Shown here: positions 9,727 through 63,596 of the stretch, piece by piece
How positions within the stretch are numbered: position 1 is the first letter of the stretch
How the letters are laid out: the number at the start of each line of letters is the position of its first letter
Origin: Perkinsus chesapeaki ATCC PRA-425
Lineage: Eukaryota > Protista > Perkinsozoa
Direction of reading: 5' to 3'
Assembly: GCA_013115145.1 (NCBI GenBank)
Contig: JAAPAO010000021.1
Span: forward strand, 68,291-132,290
Length of the DNA stretch: 64,000 nt
The notes under the pieces: model-generated
The model's input: only the letters and a program-made list of their open reading frames with translations
Told to the model about the DNA's origin: nothing
Databases searched by the model: none
Program-made: the position numbers and the translations under genes

Positions 9727-12700
9727 ATGTCAGGATCTGTAGGCGACGGCAGTTCACGGGCATCCGAGCCCTTATCAAGTGAGCCTCCAGCAAGCCCACG
9801 GCCATCGTTGAGTGAGGTGGTGCCGTCGAGGTCGATGCCCTACAGAAGTAGTGAGAGTTGTATTACTTTTAACTCCAAAGAGTCTAGTAGGGTTGTCGAC
9901 GCTACATCGAATGGACAGGATGGAGGAGGATACCTTCGCCAGGAGATTGGACCATACTATAACTCGGCGGTGGGCAACATCAGCAGCCTACCGTGGCCTT
10001 GTCGGCTAACTAATGGTTGTAGGCTGAGCGCAGCATGTATTCCCACCAATGATGGCAATCTGAGTCCAAGGTCCATGGCACAGCTTTCCTTCAAGATACG
10101 CACTATGAATAGTACTCCCATGCTAGGATCGGGGTAGGACGACGGGAGGTGCCTTCACGGTTCATGCCAAACGTTACGAGTCTGTTTGTAGTGAGCGCCG
10201 TCTGGAGGCCTTATTTGGTCCCCCACCGGCACCGGTCAGTGTACATGGTAGTGATGCATTGTCCTTTGCGATATCACCGGCACCATCTGGAATTCTGATA
10301 AGCGGCCGGCCAGCTATAGGCCCTCCCTGTGTCCAAGATGAAGAGGATACTGTTAACAGACTCACCAAGAAGCACATCCCTCTGGTCGCCTTGGTAATCT
10401 ACACTACATTCAATTCTGTCATCGACCCTACTCAGTTGCTATTCCTATCCCTCGGAGTGGTAATATTCGTATCGCTGTGGGAGCCTCACCATCCGAGGTC
10501 GGATGTCCACCGTACCAAGCTGGAGAAGTACAATATGTTTATATCATCTCCAATGTCCTCGTACTTCCCTATCGACCTCTGTATCCATCGGACAGGTATG
10601 TTGTAAGCGAAGACCAGAACGTCACATTACCATTTGAAAGAGACGCCAGAGCTGTCGACATAAAGGTTGTGGCTAGCAAAGTAGAGTGAAGGCCATGTCA
10701 CACGGTAGCTGCTTTGGGCAGGATGGGCCGCCATCCAGCGAAGTTCATGAGGGAGAGGCACCCGAGCTTTCTGGAAGGTTGTTGAGATGGCAACTGTGGT
10801 ATGACCCGGCACTTAGAGACGTCATTGCGGATAGTCACAAGAGGCAGCTCGCTGGTAGTTCAGCGGCGATCTTGCCGTGTGCACCGTGCAGCTGGTTAGG
10901 TGCGGAGGCAGAGAAGATGCTTTACGATAATTCTCTGCAACTGCATACCAATTTCGAGGCTGAGCTCTTCGAGAATGTGGACCTAGTAACTGACCTGTTA
11001 GCCCTATGTGGGAATGCAAAGCTAGGTGCCAATATTCAATGAGGAAAGTATATCCACTGGCGATGGTCGAGTGCCTTTAAAGCTACTCATTTGGGTTGAT
11101 CGTGATGGACCTCCAATATCGTTCCTCTTCGAGCCGCTCTTACTTGGCAATGTCGCTCGATATAGGGTTGTTATCGCGGGTGAGTTTTGGAGCGGGGATG
11201 GTTTGTCGATAATATTGACGGTTCTCATATGCTTGGACGAAGCGTTCTGGAGTTGAACCTCTTGCGGATGTTTCCCTAGCCGTGGATGTCAGGCATTCTT
11301 TTCCTTGCCACCTTCATCCTTATTATCACCGAGAAGATCCACAGAGTGTAGGTGGGAGTCCCGAGTAGGCGCTAAGCTGCATGTGGCTAGATACGCCACT
11401 TTCATTGGTTCTATGTTGGGATTATTTTTAATAGCTTTATTACATGAAGTGCCAGAATTAATGGATATAATGGCAATGGTGGATTTTGGTACACTTATGT
11501 TGTTATTTAGTATGATGGTTAATGTAATCTATTAATAACAATAATAACAACAACTCAATACATAATTATTATAATGACTATAGGTACACCTGTTGGCCTT
11601 AACTGGATTCTTCCAATATATAGCAGCTCGTATGGTTATTCTTGCCAAGGGACGGATATCCTTACTCTTCTTTCTCCTCACCATTTCAACTGGTGTAATC
11701 ATTATCCGTGCGTCCACTTTACATATCCTTGCAATAAATAAAGAAACAAGATATCTGTCCTCTTTTCTGAGGAGTCCGTCTTGCTTCCTTGAATCCTAGT
11801 CTTGTCGGTCTTTTGCTCTGTATGTACATCCCTTGCATAGGTCCTTTCAGCCTTCCTAGATAACGTCACAACAGTTATGCTGGTGGGGCCTGTAACTATA
11901 TCCCTCTGCAAGGAGATAAAGAGAAGTCCAGTACCATTCTATCTTTCGGAGACGCTTCTCGGTGCGTCCGAGCTTTCATGGCTTCTCTTGCACACTTTCG
12001 CGTATTCTCGGACGCTCCATAGGGTACGCTTCAAGCTAAGATGTTCTGTTCCTCAGCTACCATCGGTGGTACAGCGACCTTGATTGGAGATCCTCCTAAC
12101 GTTGTCATTGGTTCCAAGCTTGGCATCTCCTTCACCGACTTCATCATGTGAGTATCCAGCACTATCACGGTTGGCCCTGCTCCATTTTGCCCCTAGCCAG
12201 TTACAACGGTCCTCTGGTTGTATTGCTCCTGCCGTCGGCGGCTGGGCTGCTCTACTTGCGGTTTAAATCTGAAGTCTCTGGCAAGGCGGTACTCGACGAA
12301 GAACGAATAAAGAAGGAGAATATCATTCACGATAAAGTATTTCTTCCTCAGCAATTCTTCGTGGTGCGATAGCGTATCTTTTAGGTCGCGTTTGCCCAGA
12401 TCGGATCTTTATTCATTGCCATTATCCTAGCACTATTCCTCTCACCAGTAGCCCGTCTTCTGCTTACTCCTATCCTTCCTGACTCTAAGGTACACGGCTA
12501 TGAAGCTGCATGGTTTACCCTCCTTGGAATGTATGTGGGATGTATCGTCCTATCACCTCATGACATTCATCGAGTTCTTGAAGCTGTCGAGTGGGACACC
12601 CTTATTTTCTTTGCTAGTCTCTTCGTTCTCGTAGAAGCAGTAAATGAGCTCGGTCTTATACGGTGAGCTTGGCCCGCTATGTACAGTAAGTGCTTCAATT

Positions 12701-13605
12701 TCTGCTGTTTATTAGAGCACTAGGGGACCTCATCACCGATATTATTACGTCTGTTCCAATCTCTCATCGACTCTGGGTGTCACAATTGCTCATCCTGTGG
12801 GTCTCTGCCATGGGCAGTGCCTTCCTAGAGAGCCTTCCGTAAGTTGGCGTCTCTCGGTGCTGTCACACTGTGGCTAGATACACCACCACAGTAGCCTACA
12901 TCCTCATTAATATTCAAGGGAAGTCAGATTTGGGTATACCAGTCGCTCCACTAGCGTACGCCCTGTCCGGTACAAGAGACTGATGTGCTCCTGATGCAAA
13001 AGGTGTCATTTTTAGTTGGTGCCTGTGTCGGTGGAATCGGCTCTATTATGGGAAGCAGCGCTAACCTTGTATGTATGGCTATATCTCAGAGGTGAAGCTC
13101 CAAGATTGCCTTCGTACTCCGATAGACTAGCTCGTGGAAGATACTCTACCGTAGACAACAACGACGATAAGAACTCCCCCGAGAAGGAAACGACTAAACT
13201 GGAAGCGGTTGATGAAAACAGGCCGGCCTATTCCTCAACGGGCGGCGTCGACGTCAATGAGATTCACCATATAGAGATAAACCGGACACTATTCGGCCAT
13301 GGTCGGGCCGTTGCACTCTGACACCTCTCGACAGTATTTTCAGACGAAGTTGCGCCTGCTATAGTGGGAGCATCGCCCAGCCAAGAAGAGCTTGGTGTCC
13401 CGGCAAAGCGACACCCAATAACTGAGTGCAACAATGTGGAGGCTAAGTGACGGCGAATGCTCCATCCCCGAGGGAATGCTCCCATCTCAGGCACTTCCTT
13501 CAATATGGTTTCCCTCTCCTTTTATGTCTTATGCTTATCTGTAGTGTGTATCAAGTCATAGTCTTCGAGGTCATCGGTGCCGCCAATGATATGCCCGACC
13601 ACTAA
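9727..13605 (+). CDS. P-protein (OCA2-like) / ArsB-NhaD ion-transporter superfamily permease, copy 1, multi-exon
   Basis: Spliced motifs LALTGFFQYIAARMV, AFLDNVTTVMLVGPVT, GGTATLIGDPPN, AVEWDTLIFFASLF and GIGSIMGSSANLV; ends ...VIGAANDMPDH*. Confidence 0.85.
11388..11639 (+). repeat. 252-bp AT-rich tract identical to 15486-15737 (includes a 60-nt intron, 11524-11583)
   Basis: Base-by-base manual comparison found no mismatch; 11401-11580 is 46/180 GC. Confidence 0.95.
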
Positions 13606-13870: not shown

Positions 13871-16800
13871 ATGGCAGACTCCACCATCGGCGCGAGAGAG
13901 GGAAGGCGACACACCCCGGAACGCAGGGGATCGCTGGTGATGCCTTCGCAGCAGAATCTCCTTCAAAGGAGTAAATGCTTCATAGCGCCTTCTACTGTCA
14001 TTACCTCGTCTGTAGGGCTATCAACTTTACACAGAATGGATAGGATGGATGAGAATACCTTCTCAAGGAGACTAGACCATACCATAGCTCGAAGGTCGAA
14101 GGAAAGCCCTACCTCGGGCTACTGAAAACAATTCTCTGATTGAGCAGATTGAGCGCCAGCAACCTGCTGGACACAGCAGGGTCAGGACCACACATCGTTA
14201 CAAGTCCCCACTTTTCCCTTGGATCTCAGTACACAGGAAGGAACTACAACGAGTGATGTGGACGGGCTTGAGATAACAAATGAAGACTCTATCAATAGGC
14301 TCACCAAAAAGCACATACCTGGCGTGGCGCTGGTAAACCTGCTTATTACAACCTGCGTCTTATTCGCCGTCTTGAAGCAACTCATCCCACTGCCGCTTAG
14401 CCGCCATGACGATATATTACCGTGTATTTCTCCTTTATTGTAGCTACTTATTATGGCGATGGCTGTGGTGGTGTTTGTAACGCTATGGAATCCCAACTAT
14501 GCTAGGGAGGATGTACACAGAACTAAGCTTAAGAAATACAACATGCACATCTCCTCCCTGATGTGAAGGGCATTCTCCCTTTCATCCATTCAACTCCAGC
14601 CAGGTTCGTTGTTAGTAAAGATTCCAATCTCACTTTGCCGGTTCACAAGAATCCGCGAGCACTGGATGTGAAGGTCGTCACTAGCAAGGTGGATGCCCTC
14701 ATTGCCACGGTATAGTGACTTGTGAACCGTGCTGTAAGCTAGGATACGAATACGTTATGGAGCCACCTTGAAGAAGCCACTCTAATCGACGAGCTCCCTG
14801 AGGAGTCTGGTAGAACCCTCAACTGGCAGTTGTGGTATGACCCGGCGCTGGAGCTTCCTGCCTCCAACAAAAGGGCCTTGCTAGAAGGTGCTGTTAGATT
14901 TCCTGCTCTATGATGTTAGCTTAGGACCGACAACAGAGACGCTGCTTTATAGCAACTCGTTGGCCTTGGCTACCAATGTCGAGGCGGAGTTCTATCAAAA
15001 TGTTGATCTGGTAAGGCCGTGCCACACAGTTTGCCCACTAGCCAACGGCACGCTGGAACACTTCAACATGGTCTCTGTAATTCGTGGCTCAGTTTATTGC
15101 TATGCAAGGCTTATTACCCCAGCGTGCTCGGGCTTACCCACTCGAATAGGTGCCCATCTACAAAGATTATGGCATACCCACAGACCAAGACACTATACCG
15201 CTTAAATTCGTCATTTGGCTGGAGGGCGATGGCCTGCCTATATCGTTCTTCTTTGAAGCCCTTCCTCTCGGTAACGTTGCTCGGTACCGGGTATTGATCG
15301 CAGGTAGGAGAGGCATTGTGCTCGGGTCTGCAGTAGAAAGGATGTTGCAGGTATTCTTTTTGTGTGCACTTTCGCCCTTATTATCACCGAAAAGATGCAC
15401 AGAGTGTAAGGGGAAATCCAGAACTACGAGTTCAGCCTTCTTTCATTACCCTCAGTTAGTGGCACTTGAGCGAGCTCGCGTTTTGTAGATACGCCACTTT
15501 CATTGGTTCTATGTTGGGATTATTTTTAATAGCTTTATTACATGAAGTGCCAGAATTAATGGATATAATGGCAATGGTGGATTTTGGTACACTTATGTTG
15601 TTATTTAGTATGATGGTTAATGTAATCTATTAATAACAATAATAACAACAACTCAATACATAATTATTATAATGACTATAGGTACACCTGTTGGCCTTAA
15701 CTGGATTCTTCCAATATATAGCAGCTCGTATGGTTATCTATGCCAAGGGGAGGGTCTCTTTGCTCTTCTTCCTCCTTACAATATCATCTGGGGTACCAAC
15801 ACATCACCCGAACCATTCAATTGTGCTTGCTCTTGTGCAGCTCCTATCAGGATTTCTAGACAACGTCACAACCGTGATGTTAATAGGACCGGTTACTATA
15901 TCCCTCTGCAAGGAGATAAAGAAGAGCCCAGTGGCATTTTACCTGGCTGAGACCTTCCTCGGTAACACACATTGAGCGTTATCAACTGTACAGTAGAGCC
16001 AATCAGCTACTATGGGCGGAGCAACAACACTGATTGGTGATCCCTCCAACATCATCATAGGATCCAAACTAGGTATCTCTTTCACAGACTTCCTCGTGTA
16101 AGTTCACGAGGATGAGCTACTCGTTCGTAGCTCAAATCTCGAGCCCGACTTTGCAGATACAATGCTCCTTTGGTACTGATACTTCTGCCCATTGCAGCTT
16201 TCATTCTATATACACGTTTTAAGTCGGAAGTATCGGGTATGGTGGAGTTGGATATTGAGAAAATGAAAAGGGAAAACATCATCCATGATAAAGTAACGCT
16301 TAGCAGTTCTCACTTGGGCTTACGCCGTTGCATTGTTGTTCAGGTAGCCTTCGCCCATGTAGCCTCCCTGTTTGCAGCGATTGTGCTCGCTCTATGCCTG
16401 TCCCCAGTGAGCAACCTGTCCATGGTCTACATTCAGTATTTCCTATCAGGTGCATGGCTTCGAGCCAGCCTGGTTCACCCTCATGAGTATGTACATCGGA
16501 TGTATGATCACATCCCCCCATGATTTCCATAAAGTCTTGGAAGCTGTCGAATGGGACACCCTAATTTTCTTCGCCAGCCTCTTTGTCTTTGTCGAAAGCA
16601 TCAACGAATTGGGCCTTATTAGGTCCGTCATCAGCGCACCTACCACGGTCCTACATTCCTCTGGTCAGGGCTATTGGAGACGTCCTCACCAATATCATAA
16701 CTTCTGTTCCCATTGAGCACAGGCTCTGGGTGGCGCAGCTGCTGATTCTGTGGGTCTCAGCCATTGGCAGTGCCTTCCTTGAAAGCTTACCGTAAGCCAT

Positions 16801-17610
16801 ACACAATAAGCGCAACAGCTTCTGCTCGTTGACACCGATAACTTTACTTCATCAAGGCAGTATAATATCAGATACACCACTACAGTTACGTACATTCTGG
16901 TGAACCTAAGAGGACAGAGTGATCTCGGCATACCCATAAAACCTCTGGCATTTGCTCTATCGGGTGAGGCAATCCTGGTCAGTTATGCTGTATCATACAC
17001 CCTCAGTTGCGGCATGTACGGGAGGAATCGGCTCGATCATGGGCAGTAGCGCGAATCTCGTCTGCATGGCGATTTCTCAGAGGCAAGTGAAGTGCCTCCA
17101 GTTGTGTAAATATCACGGAAGGGAAGGTATGCTGATGCCGATGAGGATGAAGCTAAGGCGGAGGCGGATAAGGCAGAAGACGATGAGAAATCTGTTCACT
17201 CCGTCACTCGTGGGGATGGTGTACAGCTTGTTCACCATAGCGCAATCAATCGTAGCCTTTTTGGCGAAGGTAAGCGTGGGCTCTGTAGAGGCACTGCCGC
17301 CATTGGAGACCGCGCTTTTTGTGAGATTCCTTCTTTTTGACCGTAGCCCCTTCAGATGACAATCTGATGCCAGTGAGCCCTGGCGGCGATGAAGAGCACC
17401 CTCCCCAGCCTGCCGTAAAAAGGCACCCTATCGCTGAAGCTAGAGCTGTCGAGGCCAAGTACGCCTTGTTGTGGTTATGCTGCGTAATCTGTAAACAGGC
17501 ACTTCCTTCAGTATGGTTTTCCCCTTCTAATGTGCCTTATGGTCATCTGTAGTTTATATCAAGTCATACTGTTCGAGTTCATCGGCGCCGCCAATGATAT
17601 GCCGGCTTAA
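13871..17610 (+). CDS. P-protein (OCA2-like) / ArsB-NhaD permease, copy 2, multi-exon
   Basis: Same motif order as copy 1 (VGLSTLHRMDRM, GFLDNVTTVMLIGPVT, GGATTLIGDPSN, AVEWDTLIFFASLF, GIGSIMGSSANLV); ends ...FIGAANDMPA*. Offset from copy 1 is about 4.1 kb. Confidence 0.85.
15486..15737 (+). repeat. 252-bp AT-rich tract identical to 11388-11639 (intron 15622-15681)
   Basis: Direct sequence comparison. Confidence 0.95.
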
Positions 17611-36771: not shown

Positions 36772-36941
36772 CTGTCTCGATGAAAAAATGAGCCAACTGT
36801 AAAAGAACAGTTGATCTGTACACTAATCGCCTTCAATTAATCGATACGTTTGAAGCGGCGTTCATGTCCCCGTTGGATCATAGTTCAATCGAGCTAGCGC
36901 GCGCCCTAGTGATCGATTTTTTGATAGACTATCGAAGGCAG

Positions 36942-38595
36942 ATGTACTCTCCGATGGAGGCCATCAGGTAGGCTCCGATCGGCTTCAAACTCCATCTGCT
37001 ATCCGCGCTCTCCCTATGGGAAATGTCTTCACTAGGATTGGTCGGTATTCTCCTCTATCGACGGTTCATTTATATACGGTATTATTGGGATTTGTGTAGG
37101 GATGTGTCAACAGCCTATGTTGGTCTGATGATGGTCAATTCCTCCTTACCGGTAGCGATGACAGACGTCTAGCTCTATGGAGGTTTGACAATCACGATTT
37201 CGACAGTGCTTCGGCTAAGCGACCAGTTCGCCTATTGGAGACCGGTGGGTCCAGCGGGGTGTCAGCAGCCTTCTCAAGTGGCCGGTCTCAGGGCACAGTC
37301 TCAATATCTTTCACGGTCGGTTCTTCCCGGGCAGCACATCGCTGATTGCCAGCTGCAGCCTTGACGCCTCCGTACGAGTTCACGACATCACCACTTCTAC
37401 CAACATAGTGTGTAGCACCGCTCATCGGGAGAGGGTTAAAAAACTAGTAAGACTGCGTTCCGTACCCCACAGATCTCCACCATACCAAAGGTGCTGCCAT
37501 GGGACTGCCCTTCCCTGGTGATATCCTGCAGCCACGATGGAACTATAAGGCAGATGGACATCAGAGATCCAGCATCATGCAAGAGCCCTGATGTAGGCGC
37601 CCCTGTGGGACGGTGGGCTACACTGCGAGCTTCAGATACTGGCCAGTTGGAGCGAAGGCATCAATGGTATCAGCGGTGGGTGGAATCTTCGACCATATTC
37701 CTTACTAGCCGGTGGGGAGCGGCCGACACTTAGTGTGTATGATCGGCGGCGAATGCATGCGTTGCAGTGTGGTGACAGCACGGCCTCGCCGTGCGTGGTT
37801 GCCGAACTCCAAGGGCCCGACCCTGCTATATCCGATGCTGATTTGAAGGAGCTATGTGTTAGTGGTGTATGTTTATCCCAAAGTGGTAGAGTAGGTATTG
37901 GTTCATGGATGAATGGTGAAGGTATATATGCATTTGATATTGATAATCCTAATAAACCTATTGGTCCACCATTTAAAGGACATGCTAACTCACGTACAGT
38001 TAAAGAAGTATCATTTATTGGATTAAATCAAGAATATATTGCCAGTGGTAGCGATGATGGTAACTGGTTTGCATGGCGACTACATGGGCCTTCTCACTGT
38101 GAGCAAGCGGACTCAGGGTCTCCGCCATCTCCTGTGGACTCACGGCTTGTCCATGTTGGTCTTGAGGCCGATCTCGAAGTGGTGAACTGTGTCCAGCAGC
38201 ATCCCTCTCAGTGCTGTGTGGTCACCTCTGGCATCGAAGATGACATTAAAGTGTGGCGTCCTGAACGAGCTGTCACATTTCATCATCGCCGGCAGTCGGT
38301 GCGTGATGATCCGAGACTGCGGCAGATAGTGACGGAGAATCTCAGCAGGACGGCTGACACTCAGGGGCTAAGTAACTTTATCCTTACCATTCTTCGTCGA
38401 AGATTCCCTCAAGCTCGCAACATCCAAAGGTTTGGCTCCACTGTAGTGTTTACGAGGTCACCGTCCTCATCGTCAGAGAGCAGTGACCCAGCTGTTGAGT
38501 CCAGCGATGCCAGCTTCACAGAGGCCATTTCCTTGGAGGTTCAATCGGCTCTCACTTCTACGGACCAGGAATCCCTCGATGATGATGACGACTGA
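36942..38595 (+). CDS. DCAF8/DCAF6/WDTC1-like WD40 protein, copy A (start approximate)
   Basis: GCVNSLCWSDDGQFLLTGSDD, FKGHANSRTVKEVSFIG..EYIASGSDDGNWF, ADLEVVNCVQQHP and TSGIEDDIKVW. Confidence 0.85.
37861..38082 (+). repeat. 222-bp AT-rich coding tract, 218/222 identical to 39703-39924
   Basis: Manual comparison found four mismatches, all transitions; 37861-38040 is 58/180 GC. Confidence 0.95.
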
Positions 38596-38720
38596 CGGCA
38601 TGTATGATGATCGGCCCAGTATGGAAGGAGTCATCACAGTGGGCGTGTAATTATTGCCTAGTTTCACAACGGACATACCTACGCAGTGTTCGTGCCCTTG
38701 GCTTATTGCATCTCAGCTCC

Positions 38721-40573
38721 ATGTCATTTTATGACCGGCATCAGTGCCGCCCCCGCCGCTACAACTGCCTCCCTGGGGGCTACCATCTTCTGGGGGCTCG
38801 AAGCCTCTCGGCGAACTGGCGCATGTATCCAGCCAGATTGAAACGAAGTGAGGTTGATCTCGACGCTCACGCAGTAAGTCCCGGTAGGGTTGGCGCCCCC
38901 TATCTCCCTTGGTCGATTGTTGACTCCCTTCAGGGCTGTGTCAACACCTTATGTTGGTCTGAGGATGGCCAGCTGCTGCTATCGGGCAGCGATGACACAC
39001 ATCTGATGCTATGGCGATATAGCGATATTACGGCTCGAGAGGGACTAGGGGGAACATGTCGGCCGGCGGAGATCATTCACACAGGTCGGATAGGCATGGT
39101 TGGTAGTGGAGCTGGAGCAGCTTTGGGGAGCAGGTCATAGCAGCAACATATTTCACAGCCGGTTCTTCCCGGACCGATCATTCCTTGTGGCCAGCTGTAG
39201 CCTGGACGGCAGTGTGAAGGTCATTGACATCGAGAACGGTATAGTGCTGGAGACCAGCAGTGCCCACAAGGATATGGTCACCAAACTGGTACGCCCTCGC
39301 CTCGGCTTGATCGACTTGTGCTTATCAGGTGATACCATGGGACAGTCCTCAGTTGGTCATATCGTGTAGTGCTGACTCTACCATACGGCAGTTTGACCTC
39401 AGAGCAGGACCGTCATCGTCGGAAATCCTCTCCCGGTGGGCAGACTGGCGAGGCGGCATCAATGCTATCAGCGGTGGATGGGCCATGCGACCCTACTCGG
39501 TGAGATTACTACCATTGCTTCCTTTAAAGAGAGTGCATTCTACCAGATCCTAGCTGGTGGAGATTGGCCTGTAGTGCAGCTGTATGATAGAAGGCGGATG
39601 GGGTTGGACGGTCGAGCTAGCCACTCAGCACCAGGGCCTCAGCCAGTGGTCAGCCTTCGGGGACCTGCTATGAGCAATAGTCGAACTGAAAGGCTAACAG
39701 TCAGTGGTGTATGCCTATCCCAAAGTGGTAGAGTAGGTATTGGTTCATGGATGAATGGTGAAGGTATATATGCATTTGATATTGATAATCCTAATAAACC
39801 TATTGGTCCACCATTTAAAGGACATGCCAACTCACGTACAGTTAAAGAAGTATCATTTATTGGATTAAATCAAGAATATGTTGCCAGTGGTAGCGATGAT
39901 GGTAACTGGTTTGCATGGCGACTAAGGCAGGGACATTCCAGCATCGTCCAGGAGATGGCGTCCTGCGATGACCCCGACTCTGGGACGGTCGGCTTCCCTA
40001 TCGACCCTCGACTTTGCCATGTCGGTCTCAACGCGGATTCCGAGGTCGTCAACTGTGTACAGCAGCACCCCACTGACTTCTGCGTGGCCACCGCTGGCAT
40101 CGACAACGACATCAAAATTTGGCGCCCTTCTGGGGATCGCTCCGTCCGACCAAGTGTCACTGATATCCGACGGATCTGCCGTGAGAACTCCCTCTTGGAG
40201 TTCGGCCGCAGCAGCAACAGCATAGCTTCAATGAGCGCAATGCTCCGTTTACTAGGTGAACAGCTTAGACGGAGCGAAGTTGATGATAGCAGTGAGGATG
40301 AGGCGGAGCTCGAAGCTCGGAGGCGACTCAGGGAACTGGTAATACTGGCAGTAGGGTTAGCAGCAGCAGTGGGGGGGTCTAATGCGTGTATTGATTCAGT
40401 TGACAAGTATGGCGGGGGAACAATCCGACTCGGACGATGACATGGAAGATGAACTTCTGAGTGATGACGATGATGACGAGGATAACGAGCGACCGAATGA
40501 TAGCGATGATGAAGACTCACCGCCAGATCCGGCCAGGCGGCGACCACGTATGATCAGATGCCTCCAGCAGTGA
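38721..40573 (+). CDS. DCAF8/DCAF6/WDTC1-like WD40 protein, copy B, predicted C-terminal CaaX (CLQQ)
   Basis: GCVNTLCWSEDGQLLLSGSDD, GHSSNIFHSRF, FKGHANSRTVKEV and ADSEVVNCVQQHP; the acidic tail ends ...MIRCLQQ* after a presumed intron at about 40376-40397. Confidence 0.85.
39703..39924 (+). repeat. 222-bp AT-rich coding tract matching 37861-38082
   Basis: Direct sequence comparison. Confidence 0.95.
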
Positions 40574-40751
40574 GTGCTGATGTCACATTTTTAAACAGTT
40601 GTTGTTGTATATGTTGTTGTTTGTTTGCTCCCATTTCTGGACTGCTCCTGCTTCATGATGCTCACCGTTTCCTTCTCATGGTGTTGACTGGATGGGCTGC
40701 TGCTGCAGACGACAGTTGTAGTTCATTTTATTGTTGGTTCGACTGGTGTGA

Positions 40752-60105: not shown

Positions 60106-61068
60106 TTACCTGCCATCCCCTCCATCCATCCTAGTGCCCCACAGTAGCCTGGGGTCCTCCGAGAACTTCAAGGGGACAATTCCTGTGTACAGAGTTTGAA
60201 GCCTGACCTCGGACGACACGCCACAGCCCGACTCGATATCGGCAAGCAGGGAATGCCGAGCGCTTTCGTTGGTCAACCGCACTCGGCCGGCATCAGGCGA
60301 CACCGGCGGGGCGCTCGGAGCCGCGCCTCTAACGAAGGCGTCGAACTCCCAGAACATAAGAAAGTGCGAATTAAGGACCACCGCTGGGATGGTGAGGGCG
60401 TAGTGGTAGAGAAGCCAGACGATACTGGTCACGCCAACACCGTAGATGACATCAATAGTATAATGAAAATGGGTACATATAATGACGAGTAGGGAGAAAA
60501 CACCAAAGCCGATGCCGAACAGCTTCTCCCTCCACGTCCGAGAGTAAGTGGACCAAACCATTATGGATAAGGTAATCGGGATGGAGTGTCCAGAATAGAA
60601 CACATCAGCACAGGTATGAGACAGTCCAAACGGCATTAACATCACCGACCAGAAGGGGCTACCGTCGACAAGCCGAGGCATGCACATAGGGTCTGGATTC
60701 GGCAACATGGTCACTGGGACACAGAGAGCTCGGCCTAAGTATGATGCCGAGCTCAGCAACAACGCTCGCTTTATTATAATAGACGCTCGACTTGGTTTAA
60801 ACGCGAAAAAAAGGCGGCCGATTGCTAGTACCATGCAGAGCAACATGCAGGTGTCGGGGAGGCTGAAACCGAGCCCGTCACTGGAGTACTGTGGGAGTAG
60901 CTCAAATCCCAAGTCTGGCAAAACCGTCGGGTTAATGACCAGACCTGTCTGAGGATCTCTCGGCCAGTAATAATCTGCCCTGTACTGTGCCCATACGTTT
61001 ACTACTGAATTGATCATCATGCCGAGGGCCCATGCACCCACTGCTGGCAGTAGCCGACTGGAAACCAT
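60106..61068 (-). CDS. Sphingomyelin/IPC synthase-family (PAP2-like) sphingolipid synthase, copy 1
   Basis: LPDLGF, HTCADVFYSGHS and THFHYTIDV (SMS catalytic motifs); about 6 TM; intronless. Confidence 0.9.
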   Translation of the reverse strand: MVSSRLLPAVGAWALGMMINSVVNVWAQYRADYYWPRDPQTGLVINPTVLPDLGFELLPQYSSDGLGFSLPDTCMLLCMVLAIGRLFFAFKPSRASIIIKRALLLSSASYLGRALCVPVTMLPNPDPMCMPRLVDGSPFWSVMLMPFGLSHTCADVFYSGHSIPITLSIMVWSTYSRTWREKLFGIGFGVFSLLVIICTHFHYTIDVIYGVGVTSIVWLLYHYALTIPAVVLNSHFLMFWEFDAFVRGAAPSAPPVSPDAGRVRLTNESARHSLLADIESGCGVSSEVRLQTLYTGIVPLKFSEDPRLLWGTRMDGGDGR

Positions 61069-61346
61069 TCAAAAATGGGCTGCGAAAAGCCATGTGGTAA
61101 TTTGACAAGGCAACATAGGGAAAGCGGGCGAAACGGTATTTAAAACGGACAAGTAGCAAATGCCCTTTAGGGCCACGAGGATCCAAAATGAATACACAAA
61201 GGAAGTACACCGAATACAATGATACACAATTAGTAAATAACTTGATGATAAACTGGATGACGGCCTGCCACTGTGGGCCACGTCCGTGCAGAGGAGGTCA
61301 TAGACTGGCATTAAGCCGAGTAAATAGCAGATGCCAGCAGAGTTGG

Positions 61347-62348
61347 TCAGCTGGATAAGCTGCTATATCGGCGCCCGCCGTCAATGTCCTCTGGCACCCG
61401 AAGCCCCCATAGGACTCGTGGGTCATCGGAGAAGTCCAAGTGGACTACACCTAAGAAGGGATCATTGCCCACGTTACCGCATTCGGCAGAGAGAAGGCTG
61501 TCTTCAATGGTGGACTGGGTGGACATGGGCCCAGTGGGGGCAAGTCGAATACGCAGGTCCGACCGTGGGCTCGGGAGAGTCGCCTGGTGGACAGCCTTGA
61601 TTAACACAGGGAAGGCATCAGCCTCCCAGTACATAAGGAACCGGGAATTGAGCATAACCGCTGGGACCTTCATTGCGTGGTGATAAACACGCCAGGCAGT
61701 GAAGGTCACCGCTACGCCATAGACAACGTCAATTGTGTAGTGGAAATGAGTACCGATTATGATCACTAACGTCAGAAGGCCCCACAGAAGACCAAATAGC
61801 CGCCAACCGAAAGATGACGCATAGTCGACCCAAACCATGGTGGCCAGGGTCACAGAGATTGAATGGCCCGAATAAAAAACGTCCGCACACGTATGGGCAA
61901 GGCCGAAGGGGACCAGGAAGACCGATACGATAGGATGGTCCCAGTCCATGACCGCCTTGCAGCTGACGTCCGGATTAGGGAGCTGGGTAAGAGGGACGCT
62001 GATGGCCCTCCCCGTGTAGCCAATCGCGCCGAGAATCAATGTACGTTTGAGGACGATAGTGGCCTTATCAAAGTCGAATTTAATAAATACCATAGCAAGC
62101 GCCCCTAGCACGCACACGGTCATGCAAACGTCTGGGATGCGAACGCCGCGAAAATCACTGGAAATATACGGCAAAGACTCGAAGCCTAGATCTGGTAAAG
62201 GAGATGAGGAGTCGGCTAATAAGCCTGTGCCATGGTCCCGAGGCCAGTACCTTTCCGCCCTGTATTGAGCCCAGACATCCGCAACACAGTTGAGCATAAG
62301 GGCTGCCCCACAGAAGACAAGGGCTGGCAGCAGACGAGATAATACCAT
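61347..62348 (-). CDS. Sphingolipid synthase-family protein, copy 2
   Basis: LPDLGF, HTCADVFYSGHS and THFHYTIDV. Confidence 0.9.
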   Translation of the reverse strand: MVLSRLLPALVFCGAALMLNCVADVWAQYRAERYWPRDHGTGLLADSSSPLPDLGFESLPYISSDFRGVRIPDVCMTVCVLGALAMVFIKFDFDKATIVLKRTLILGAIGYTGRAISVPLTQLPNPDVSCKAVMDWDHPIVSVFLVPFGLAHTCADVFYSGHSISVTLATMVWVDYASSFGWRLFGLLWGLLTLVIIIGTHFHYTIDVVYGVAVTFTAWRVYHHAMKVPAVMLNSRFLMYWEADAFPVLIKAVHQATLPSPRSDLRIRLAPTGPMSTQSTIEDSLLSAECGNVGNDPFLGVVHLDFSDDPRVLWGLRVPEDIDGGRRYSSLSS

Positions 62349-62576
62349 GCAAAGGGCGCGAGGGGCAGAACAAACTGGAGGGAGGATGGGAGAGGGGGTA
62401 CTAACTCAACAATGCAGGTTATAAAATAACTACTGGACCAAAGATTCTCAAATATAGCAAGGTGATGTCCTGATTTGACGGAAGAGCGGTAGAGGACATG
62501 CAGCCGACCCATGCGGTAGTCGCTAGAACAAAAGGACTTACTTCATGTGTTCCACGTAGTCTTTGCAGCCAATCTC

Positions 62577-63596
62577 TTAGAGAGCCTTATAACCGTGTTG
62601 GTCCTCTTCAATCGGCTCTATCCTGGCCCAAGGTATCCTAGGATCCTCCGACAGGTCCCATGGTACGACCCCACCCGGCACGACCATCTGCAGCCGAGGC
62701 ATTGCCCTTGAGACAGGCCTAGTGCCACACTCAACGTCCTCGAGTAACGGAGGGACATGGACGTTTCTAGTGCTGACAGTACTGGACTCTGAGGTGGCAT
62801 TATCGTCCTCGGACTCGGGGAAGGCATCGGCCTCCCAGAACAGATAAAATCTAGAATTGAGAACCACCGCTGGTACCGTGAGACCGAAGTGGTAAAGACG
62901 CCATATTATAACAGTAAGGCCAACGCCGTAGAGGACGTCTAAGGTATAGTGGAAATGGGTACAGATGATAACAAGCATTGCAGCAACACTTAGAGCACAG
63001 CCGAAGGCACGCTCTTGAAGAGTTGGGGCATAATCTATCCAGAACATCATACTCAATGTTATAGGGATGGAGTGGCCAGAATAGAACACATCAGCACAGG
63101 TGTGAGAGATACCGAACGGCATTAACATGACCGACCAGAAGGGGCTACCTTCAATAAGGCGAGGGATGCACCTCATGTCTGGGCTGGGCAACATCGTTAT
63201 AGGCACCGATATGGCTCGGCCAAGATATGCCACGGAGCTTAGAAGGAGTACTCGTTTCAATACTATGTACGGGTGGCCTGGCCTGGGACCGATGAAGGCT
63301 CTTATGACCGCTAGTAACATGACAATGTTCATAGATACATCTGCCAGACTGAAACCGAACATGTCGTTAGGAAAATAAGGTAGAAGTTGGAATCCCAGGT
63401 CAGGCAGGACTACTGGGTCCTTTACGAAGCCTGTGGAGGGGTCACGAGGCCACACCCTGCCGGCTCGGTATTCGGCCCAGACGTTCACTACAGAATTCAA
63501 CATCATACCAGCCACCCATACCGCGATAGCGGGGTAAATCCGATGGGTAGGAGAAGAAGGCAACTTTAAGAGGTTGGATACTAAAAACTGAAGCAT
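62577..63596 (-). CDS. Sphingolipid synthase-family protein, copy 3
   Basis: LPDLGF, HTCADVFYSGHS and THFHYTLDV. Confidence 0.9.
   Translation of the reverse strand: MLQFLVSNLLKLPSSPTHRIYPAIAVWVAGMMLNSVVNVWAEYRAGRVWPRDPSTGFVKDPVVLPDLGFQLLPYFPNDMFGFSLADVSMNIVMLLAVIRAFIGPRPGHPYIVLKRVLLLSSVAYLGRAISVPITMLPSPDMRCIPRLIEGSPFWSVMLMPFGISHTCADVFYSGHSIPITLSMMFWIDYAPTLQERAFGCALSVAAMLVIICTHFHYTLDVLYGVGLTVIIWRLYHFGLTVPAVVLNSRFYLFWEADAFPESEDDNATSESSTVSTRNVHVPPLLEDVECGTRPVSRAMPRLQMVVPGGVVPWDLSEDPRIPWARIEPIEEDQHGYKAL

Follow-up and report, generated by a model that had tools for sequence, protein, structure and literature searches.

How a short coding stretch can remain almost identical in two neighbouring genes, and become strongly AT-rich in both, while its surroundings diverge is the question raised by a tandem pair of WD40 genes on the forward strand of a 64,000-nucleotide stretch of DNA (the window) from the clam parasite Perkinsus chesapeaki. 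Gene A (36864-38595), assigned by tblastn and a structural match to DCAF8, corresponds to FOL47_003543, whose 483-residue protein matches the window's open frame at 100% identity and was placed by tblastn at 36864-38577. The best match of this protein among solved structures (PDB) was human DCAF8 chain 9u7t_B (E = 2.5e-25, residues 36-448), accompanied by a Pfam WD40 match (E = 1e-17), and gene A is thus a predicted DCAF8-like WD40 substrate receptor with a beta-propeller closest to that of DCAF8 over most of its length. Gene B, its tandem paralogue (38739-40575, both the 5' and 3' limits being approximate), was delimited from the tblastn placement of a P. olseni B-type protein (38739-40341), an open frame at 40382-40573, and an RNA contig from which a 49-nt GT..AG intron had been removed (39081 joined to 39131), and which demonstrates transcription and splicing of gene B; for gene A, none of the RNA runs was listed as containing its sequence. 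A syntenic tandem pair with a copy number of two was found in each of the species compared (P. chesapeaki, P. marinus and P. olseni). The duplication is older than their divergence.

A repeat search aligned 37851-38082 in copy A with 39693-39924 in copy B as 232 nt at 97% identity, both tracts lying inside the last exon of their respective genes, whereas all of the remaining paralogous blocks of genes A and B were 74-77% identical. The in-frame parts, 37861-38082 (74 codons, GC3 0.12) and 39703-39924 (GC3 0.15), differ at four of 222 sites, as an earlier sequence-only reading had stated; the same codon occurs at 71 of the 74 positions, and three of the four differences are synonymous. Its description of all four mismatches as transitions (T, T, T and A in copy A; C, C, C and G in copy B) was likewise accurate, as was that of a GC3 near zero: only four of the 60 codons in 37861-38040 end in G or C (TCC, TGG, ATG and AAC), against nine of 20 in the flank at 38101. 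The equivalent count for the copy B counterpart was 6/60, giving a 60-codon GC3 of 0.07-0.10 for the two copies, and that for the downstream remainder of gene A was 90/170; flanking GC3 values at this locus were 0.44-0.68.

When the window was compared with itself by blastn, the only near-identical (at least 95%) paralogous tracts were that of the WD40 pair and one other, located in a pair of CitMHS-family transporter genes, and overall GC separated these two tracts (0.33-0.36) from all blocks of 69-85% identity (0.42-0.57). The window's other open frames of at least 200 codons had a mean 60-codon GC3 of 0.55 (sd 0.10), the lowest such value outside the two tracts being 0.28.

Logan contigs from two independent samples (X1 and X2) were used to check copy number. 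The flanks were reproduced exactly in both samples, a 1693-nt contig (38053-39745) runs from the last part of tract A into the beginning of tract B, and the depth of the collapsed tract was about twice that of its flanks (161 versus 75-82 in X1; 200 versus 91-106 in X2). Two copies are thereby verified, and an assembly artefact or a single collapsed copy is ruled out. Because variant bubbles are popped in such contigs, the four A/B differences are not all confirmable from them; the A/G site at 38038/39880 was the only one seen in both states (sample S2).

Comparison of the three species established that the homogenisation of this tract is a recurrent event. Over about 230 nt, copies A and B are 98-99% identical in each species, against about 50-75% in the flanks (47-50% in the upstream flank; the downstream flank contains indels), and in the 222-nt part they differ at 4, 2 and 5 sites in P. 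chesapeaki, P. marinus and P. olseni, respectively, compared with 29-47 sites between species. In the tract tree the copies cluster by species (support 100/100, 90/90 and 99/97), whereas the flank tree is divided between paralogues A and B (100/99), with P. chesapeaki sister to P. marinus plus P. olseni within each half. In each lineage, interlocus gene conversion limited to this tract has thus acted on the WD40 pair over a long time: the stretch evolves in concert while its surroundings diverge because it has been repeatedly copied between the genes by non-crossover conversion. Its edges coincide with the collapse of A/B homology, beyond which conversion therefore cannot spread, and that two copies have been stably retained speaks against unequal crossing-over as well as re-duplication. 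The initial argument against protein constraint was also upheld, given identical synonymous sites, a wholly identical intron in the second pair and a tract tree that follows species.

That second pair, referred to in the sequence-only reading as P-protein genes, comprises CitMHS copy A (10445-13600, forward strand; located by tblastn with the copy B protein; Pfam PF03600, E = 7e-59) and copy B (14453-17610, forward strand, 643 aa; tblastn). The homogenised, AT-shifted tracts occupy 11388-11687 and 15486-15785, also on the forward strand, and have an exon-intron-exon structure; 252 aligned columns of the core are identical between the P. chesapeaki copies, including the 60-nt intron (11524-11583 in copy A; GC 0.18). 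The claimed recurrence of the AT shift in an unrelated family, 26 kb from the WD40 pair, was accordingly confirmed, and it is on these two families that the analysis of the shift rests. The P. marinus CitMHS copies are also near-identical.

Gene conversion is routinely diagnosed from raised GC, and a bias of conversion towards GC is regarded as a near-general rule in eukaryotes. The corresponding signature, tract GC3 and intron GC above those of the flanks, was not found in P. chesapeaki, where the WD40 tract GC3 was 0.12-0.15 and the CitMHS intron GC 0.18. The homogenised tracts of P. marinus and P. olseni had GC contents of 0.41-0.53, near their locus means, with WD40 tract GC3 values of 0.41 (no different from the flanks) and 0.50 (slightly below flanks of 0.62-0.75), respectively. 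The AT shift is therefore confined, among the three species, to P. chesapeaki, and is present there in both pairs. Directional counts, taken at sites with one shared state in P. marinus and P. olseni and another in P. chesapeaki, with the two tracts pooled, gave 40 G/C-to-A/T changes versus two in reverse, as opposed to 36 versus 35 in the flanks (Fisher p = 3e-7); at third positions, 1/25 A/T sites in the tract had become G/C compared with 19/42 in the flank (p = 0.0003). Affected by the shift are not only synonymous sites and an intron but also some amino acids (those gained being Ile, Lys, Asn and Phe).

The polarity of these changes is unproven: with P. chesapeaki as the sister of P. marinus plus P. 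olseni, parsimony is unable to settle it. Human DCAF8, when aligned to the tract, provided just two informative positions and, at its distance, gives no polarity for the amino-acid changes, and a full-length search for distant homologues gave mostly plant WDTC1/DCAF6-type proteins with partial-query matches. The suggestion that copy A is the further eroded copy is accordingly borne out in part: it fits 37872 and 38038, is ambiguous at 37873, and fails at 37986/39828, where both outgroup species have T and the C of copy B looks derived.

Our preferred explanation, to which we assign a probability of roughly one half, is that the shift results from an AT-ward bias in the conversion process itself, the mechanism, like the polarity, being unproven. 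At a site that distinguishes the copies, both would more often finish with the A/T state, possibly through heteroduplex mismatch repair directed towards A/T, or alternatively if G/C positions were more often damaged and the broken recipient then overwritten; over many rounds of conversion, a fixation advantage of about nine-fold would suffice to lower GC3 from about 0.5 to about 0.12. Since the copies are still 98-100% identical, there can have been little mutation between rounds, and a fixation bias fits this better than does heavy mutagenesis.

Mutagenesis linked to recombination or homology, in which exposure of single-stranded DNA, error-prone synthesis or a RIP-like cytosine-to-thymine system adds G/C-to-A/T changes that conversion then spreads to both copies, is a less likely alternative. 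Transitions account for 33 of the 40 AT-ward changes and for all four current A/B mismatches, the observed/expected CpG ratio is reduced in the tracts (0.36-0.44, versus 0.75-0.78 for the window and for gene A outside the tract), and the shift ends at the tract edges, as would be expected of a homology-triggered process. However, the share of transitions is the same as in the flanks (p = 0.41), the other seven changes are C>A-type transversions, and no neighbour of the mutated C is preferred (CpG 4, CpA 12, CpT 14, CpC 10), the earlier reading having proposed a test of the CpG, CpA and TpC contexts. The (CpA+TpG)/(ApC+GpT) index of 1.21-1.31 is not RIP-like, the copies, unlike RIP products, are 98-100% identical with their reading frames kept, and the mismatch at 37986/39828 looks like a T-to-C gain. 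The proposal that a process restricted to C-to-T and G-to-A changes had been caught still accumulating is on these grounds not supported, four transitions out of four not being distinctive; of the suggestion that one process acts in both pairs, the strongly directional AT shift survives, but not that specific chemistry. At equilibrium, a biased outcome of conversion and AT-ward mutation that is quickly re-homogenised generate the same pattern.

The sister position of P. chesapeaki in the paralogue-rooted flank trees, on which the P. marinus plus P. olseni stem is about as long as the P. chesapeaki branch, also admits a reversed history, in which the AT-rich tract was present in the common ancestor, P. 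chesapeaki retains the old state, and normal composition was regained on the stem of the other two, the 40 changes then being G/C gains; the somewhat low GC3 of the P. olseni tract is in keeping with this. We regard it as improbable: an AT-ward force would still be needed in the ancestor and have to persist in P. chesapeaki, without which a GC3 of 0.12 should drift back towards the flank level; the CitMHS introns of P. marinus and P. olseni are short with ordinary GC, leaving that of P. chesapeaki as the odd one out; and a far larger part of the CitMHS pair has been converted in P. marinus, yet without any AT shift. Nucleotide-level selection for an AT-rich stretch, identical in both mRNAs and serving as an unstructured or slowly translated region or a shared small-RNA target, would be consistent with a synonymous divergence between species of 0.30-0.47 in the tract, below the 0.45-0.62 of the flanks, but is made very improbable by the same shift in an unrelated transporter pair and its intron, and by the ordinary GC3 with which P. 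marinus and P. olseni encode the same protein tract. A structured or known RNA in the tracts was ruled out, since they gave no match in Rfam and shuffled sequence folded at least as well (z = +1.4 and +0.6). Although tract composition is a strong outlier for the genome, it is scarcely credible that a tract from some AT-rich source, be it a third copy, a homeologue or a different organism, was pasted into both genes, or that the assembly is at fault: the approximately two-fold depth excludes a third identical copy, the tract and its junctions were reproduced without differences in contigs from both samples, and a foreign tract is rejected by positional orthology with the P. marinus and P. olseni tracts, which have identical edges and 79-80% identity to it, exceeding the 69-71% of the whole genes.

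If AT-biased conversion or a related process is indeed responsible, it may, more tentatively, operate throughout the P. chesapeaki genome, pushing paralogue-identical DNA towards A/T either as true AT-biased nuclear conversion or through a non-fungal homology-triggered mutator; such a process would have appeared, or grown stronger, once P. chesapeaki had separated from P. marinus and P. olseni, and AT-rich islands would then mark every active tract. A literature search for AT-biased gene conversion returned mainly plastid and yeast mitochondrial genomes rather than nuclear paralogues, with little nuclear precedent, and a search on Perkinsus yielded no paper on gene conversion or composition. 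Tracts that are orthologous and share their edges, yet are strongly AT-shifted in P. chesapeaki and compositionally neutral in its two relatives, constitute a natural contrast, and the direction and cause of conversion bias are therefore directly comparable among culturable close relatives. The shift may also provide a practical marker of active conversion tracts in the P. chesapeaki genome, and calls for caution in gene trees and lateral-transfer screens, in which such tracts seem foreign in composition and cluster by species.

Mosaic, long-lasting concerted evolution by interlocus gene conversion has been described for the mammalian BMP8A/B, DDX19A/B and TUBG1/2 pairs, the converted regions of which have raised GC3 and intron GC, taken as a hallmark of GC-biased conversion (PMC2720389). 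The Perkinsus pairs resemble them in having two stable copies with one sub-region more alike within species while the rest follows the orthologue tree, in boundaries conserved across species, and in the homogenisation of introns and synonymous sites; they differ in that their tracts, rather than having raised GC, are compositionally neutral in P. marinus and P. olseni and strongly enriched in A/T in P. chesapeaki. As with gBGC, the compositional drive is limited to recombining or converted DNA, affects coding as well as non-coding sequence and acts strongly enough to alter amino acids, but in P. chesapeaki its direction is the opposite. Fungal RIP shares an AT enrichment that is found only in duplicated DNA, is bounded by homology and consists mostly of G/C-to-A/T transitions; the P. 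chesapeaki tracts, however, have no dinucleotide context, a normal CpA/TpG index and some transversions, and their copies are intact and 98-100% identical instead of diverging or being inactivated. A RIP signature was accordingly rejected on both indices and contexts, and we know of no report of RIP in alveolates. What sets the P. chesapeaki conversion tracts apart from the usual case is that their enrichment is AT-ward and not G/C-ward.

A repeat search of the window aligned 37851-38082 with 39693-39924 at 97% identity over 232 nt, and placed all of the remaining paralogous blocks of the DCAF8-like WD40 tandem pair (gene A, 36864-38595; gene B, about 38739-40575) at 74-77%. Alignment bore out the sequence-only reading that 37861-38082 (tract A) and 39703-39924 (tract B) mismatch at only four of 222 in-frame sites, all of them transitions, with T, T, T and A in copy A facing C, C, C and G in copy B. 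The claim of near-zero GC at third codon positions (GC3) was likewise reproduced on recounting: of 60 codons over 37861-38040, four have G or C in third position (TCC, TGG, ATG and AAC), as against 9/20 in the flank at 38101 and 90/170 in the downstream remainder of gene A. GC3 over 60-codon spans averaged 0.55 (sd 0.10) across all open frames of 200 or more codons in the window; in the tracts it fell to 0.07-0.10, and in other frames never below 0.28. The tract observation is real and robust. The open frame holding tract A is 100% identical to the P. chesapeaki protein FOL47_003543, and the DCAF8-like label holds, human DCAF8 being the top solved-structure relative of the pair (E = 2.5e-25, residues 36-448). 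A 49-nt GT..AG intron of gene B was removed in one RNA contig; no RNA run was listed as carrying gene A.

That both copies exist was examined with Logan contigs of two samples, the likely source (run X1) and an independent one (runs X2 and X3). The tract flanks showed zero differences from the contigs of all three runs, in each of which a 1693-nt contig (38053-39745) links the end of tract A to the start of tract B. Depth over the collapsed tract was roughly double that of the flanks (161 against 75-82 in X1; 200 against 91-106 in X2), a ratio that cannot accommodate a third identical copy, and this read evidence from two samples contradicts an assembly artefact. At site 39880, the double-depth collapsed contig of X1 has A and assembled copy B has G, while the independent sample is mixed, one X2 contig reading A and an X3 contig G; bubbles are popped in these contigs, which gives no firm assignment of allele to copy.

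P. marinus (locus L001) and P. olseni (locus L002) have the tandem pair too, and the surroundings agree: a gene for a Cys/Met-metabolism enzyme lies upstream of the pair, and downstream of it a syntaxin gene. The public models there look wrong: at L001:7703-11043 each WD40 gene is broken into two short products (63+321 and 117+242 aa), and at L002:9034-13618 copy B is joined to the downstream syntaxin gene (980 aa). When the six tracts were aligned over 222 sites, copies A and B differed at four sites in P. chesapeaki, two in P. marinus and five in P. olseni, against 29-47 between species. The tract edges coincide within about 10 nt across all three species, and just upstream A/B identity within a species is 47-50%, with orthologues at 62-74%. 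The maximum-likelihood tract tree clusters by species (support 100/100, 90/90 and 99/97), whereas the flank tree separates an A clade from a B clade (100/99), within each of which P. marinus plus P. olseni form the sister group of P. chesapeaki. The duplication therefore predates the three species, the tract having been homogenised separately in each lineage, and these comparisons firmly support interlocus gene conversion, with concerted evolution limited to the tract. Unequal crossing-over is an ill fit, because copy number has stayed at two and the flanks remain orthologous.

Third-position synonymous divergence between species was lower in the tract (37861-38082 and its L001 and L002 orthologues; 0.30-0.47) than in the flanks (0.45-0.62), also between P. 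marinus and P. olseni, both without an AT shift; neutral concerted evolution would not lead one to expect such slower substitution. Downstream, the block at 38131-38262 and 39997-40128 has ordinary GC; the two P. chesapeaki copies agree there at 75%, above the orthologue identities of 62-70%, which hints at an older, since-decayed conversion in that lineage. Three tandem paralogous segments at 60334-63242 (70-72% identity, ordinary GC, without a homogenised tract) serve as a useful negative control inside the window.

Tract GC3 in the WD40 pair was 0.12-0.15 in P. chesapeaki (flanks 0.44-0.68), 0.41 in P. marinus (0.37-0.52) and 0.49-0.51 in P. olseni (0.62-0.75). The overall GC of homogenised tracts in the latter two species (0.41-0.53) is close to the mean of each locus, whereas in the two tracts of P. 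chesapeaki it is 0.33 and 0.36; among the three species, the AT shift is specific to P. chesapeaki. The second such tract confirmed the recurrence already noted in an unrelated family, a CitMHS-type ("P-protein") transporter pair (Pfam PF03600) whose copies at 11388-11687 and 15486-15785 show no difference in 252 aligned columns, including a 60-nt intron with a GC of 0.18. Since homogenisation and low GC go together in a second, unrelated family and also in non-coding DNA, codon or protein constraint is ruled out as its cause. The P. marinus copies are near-identical over the tract and far beyond it within the gene, with numerous blocks at 84-98%; their GC is ordinary, as is that of the shorter tract intron, and a P. 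olseni fragment (L004) is also of ordinary GC. The extent of conversion differs greatly between species, the P. marinus pair (L003:600-9200, contig GG673921.1) being homogenised over most of the gene against some 250-300 nt in P. chesapeaki, yet P. marinus GC is ordinary. The pair's second most similar block, 13488-13595 and 17496-17603 (85%, GC somewhat low at 0.44), has a P. marinus counterpart that is 98% identical with a GC of 0.41, and may be another conversion tract, old or shared.

Direction of change was counted only at sites with one base shared by P. marinus and P. olseni and a different one in P. chesapeaki. G/C-to-A/T against A/T-to-G/C differences numbered 19 and 2 in the WD40 tract and 21 and 0 in the CitMHS tract, as opposed to 36 and 35 in the WD40 flanks (Fisher's test, tracts versus flanks, p = 3e-7). 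At third positions, ancestral A/T had become G/C at 1/25 tract sites against 19/42 in the flank (p = 0.0003), and the amino-acid replacements in the tract likewise favoured codons rich in A/T (Val to Ile, Glu to Lys, Ala/Ser to Asn, Leu to Ile/Phe). A lineage-specific AT-ward drive bound to converted tracts is well supported. The proposed C-to-T/G-to-A signature was not supported: seven of the 40 AT-ward changes are transversions (33 transitions), a transition share not different from that of the flanks (p = 0.41), and mutated C showed no 3' neighbour preference (CpG 4, CpA 12, CpT 14, CpC 10). The CpA/TpG index of the tracts (1.21-1.31) is unlike that of repeat-induced point mutation; CpG observed/expected (0.36-0.44 against 0.75-0.78) indicated some depletion on small counts.

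Within the six-tract alignment, the suggestion that copy A is further eroded stood at 37872 (T against C, outgroups all C) and 38038/39880 (A against G, outgroups all G; Val to Ile), where the state of copy A is derived, but failed at 37986/39828, where both outgroups have T and the C of copy B looks like a T-to-C gain; 37873 (T against C) is ambiguous, P. marinus having C and P. olseni T. The suggestion is thus true only in part and overall was not supported, and that all four mismatches are transitions carries little weight. As P. chesapeaki is sister to both other species, whose stem roughly equals the P. chesapeaki branch in length, parsimony cannot polarise the 40 changes, nor choose between G/C losses in P. 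chesapeaki and G/C gains on that stem. Against such gains, P. chesapeaki tract composition lies far from that of its own genome and the atypical intron is its own, two points favouring a P. chesapeaki state that is derived, or at least actively maintained. For polarising the amino-acid changes human DCAF8 proved too distant, and a wider homologue search returned mainly plant WDTC1/DCAF6-type proteins matching the query in part only. Orthology with the P. marinus and P. olseni tracts contradicts a foreign origin of the AT-rich tract.

Conversion itself having been demonstrated, we infer that the favoured cause of the AT shift would be an outcome of conversion biased toward A/T, possibly through mismatch repair directed toward A/T, or through preferential breakage of the G/C-bearing copy, which would thereby become the recipient. 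The copies being 98-100% identical, little mutation builds up between conversion rounds, and suppression of A/T-to-G/C change in the tracts stands out no less than the excess of G/C-to-A/T. The main rival, AT-ward mutagenesis associated with recombination or with homology and followed by re-homogenisation, predicts the same equilibrium pattern as biased conversion. Nucleotide-level selection on the tracts found no support from an Rfam search or from folding, and is hard to reconcile with the CitMHS intron and the second family.

A literature search on gene conversion or composition in Perkinsus gave no match, and in the literature searched "AT-biased gene conversion" mainly concerned plastid and yeast mitochondrial genomes. 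The mammalian pairs BMP8A/B, DDX19A/B and TUBG1/2 exhibit mosaic concerted evolution with conserved boundaries, their converted regions having raised GC3 and intron GC, read as GC-biased conversion (PMC2720389). The Perkinsus WD40 pair shares that mosaic architecture with conserved tract boundaries; unlike in the mammalian pairs, however, the sign is reversed (AT-ward) in P. chesapeaki and neutral in P. marinus and P. olseni.
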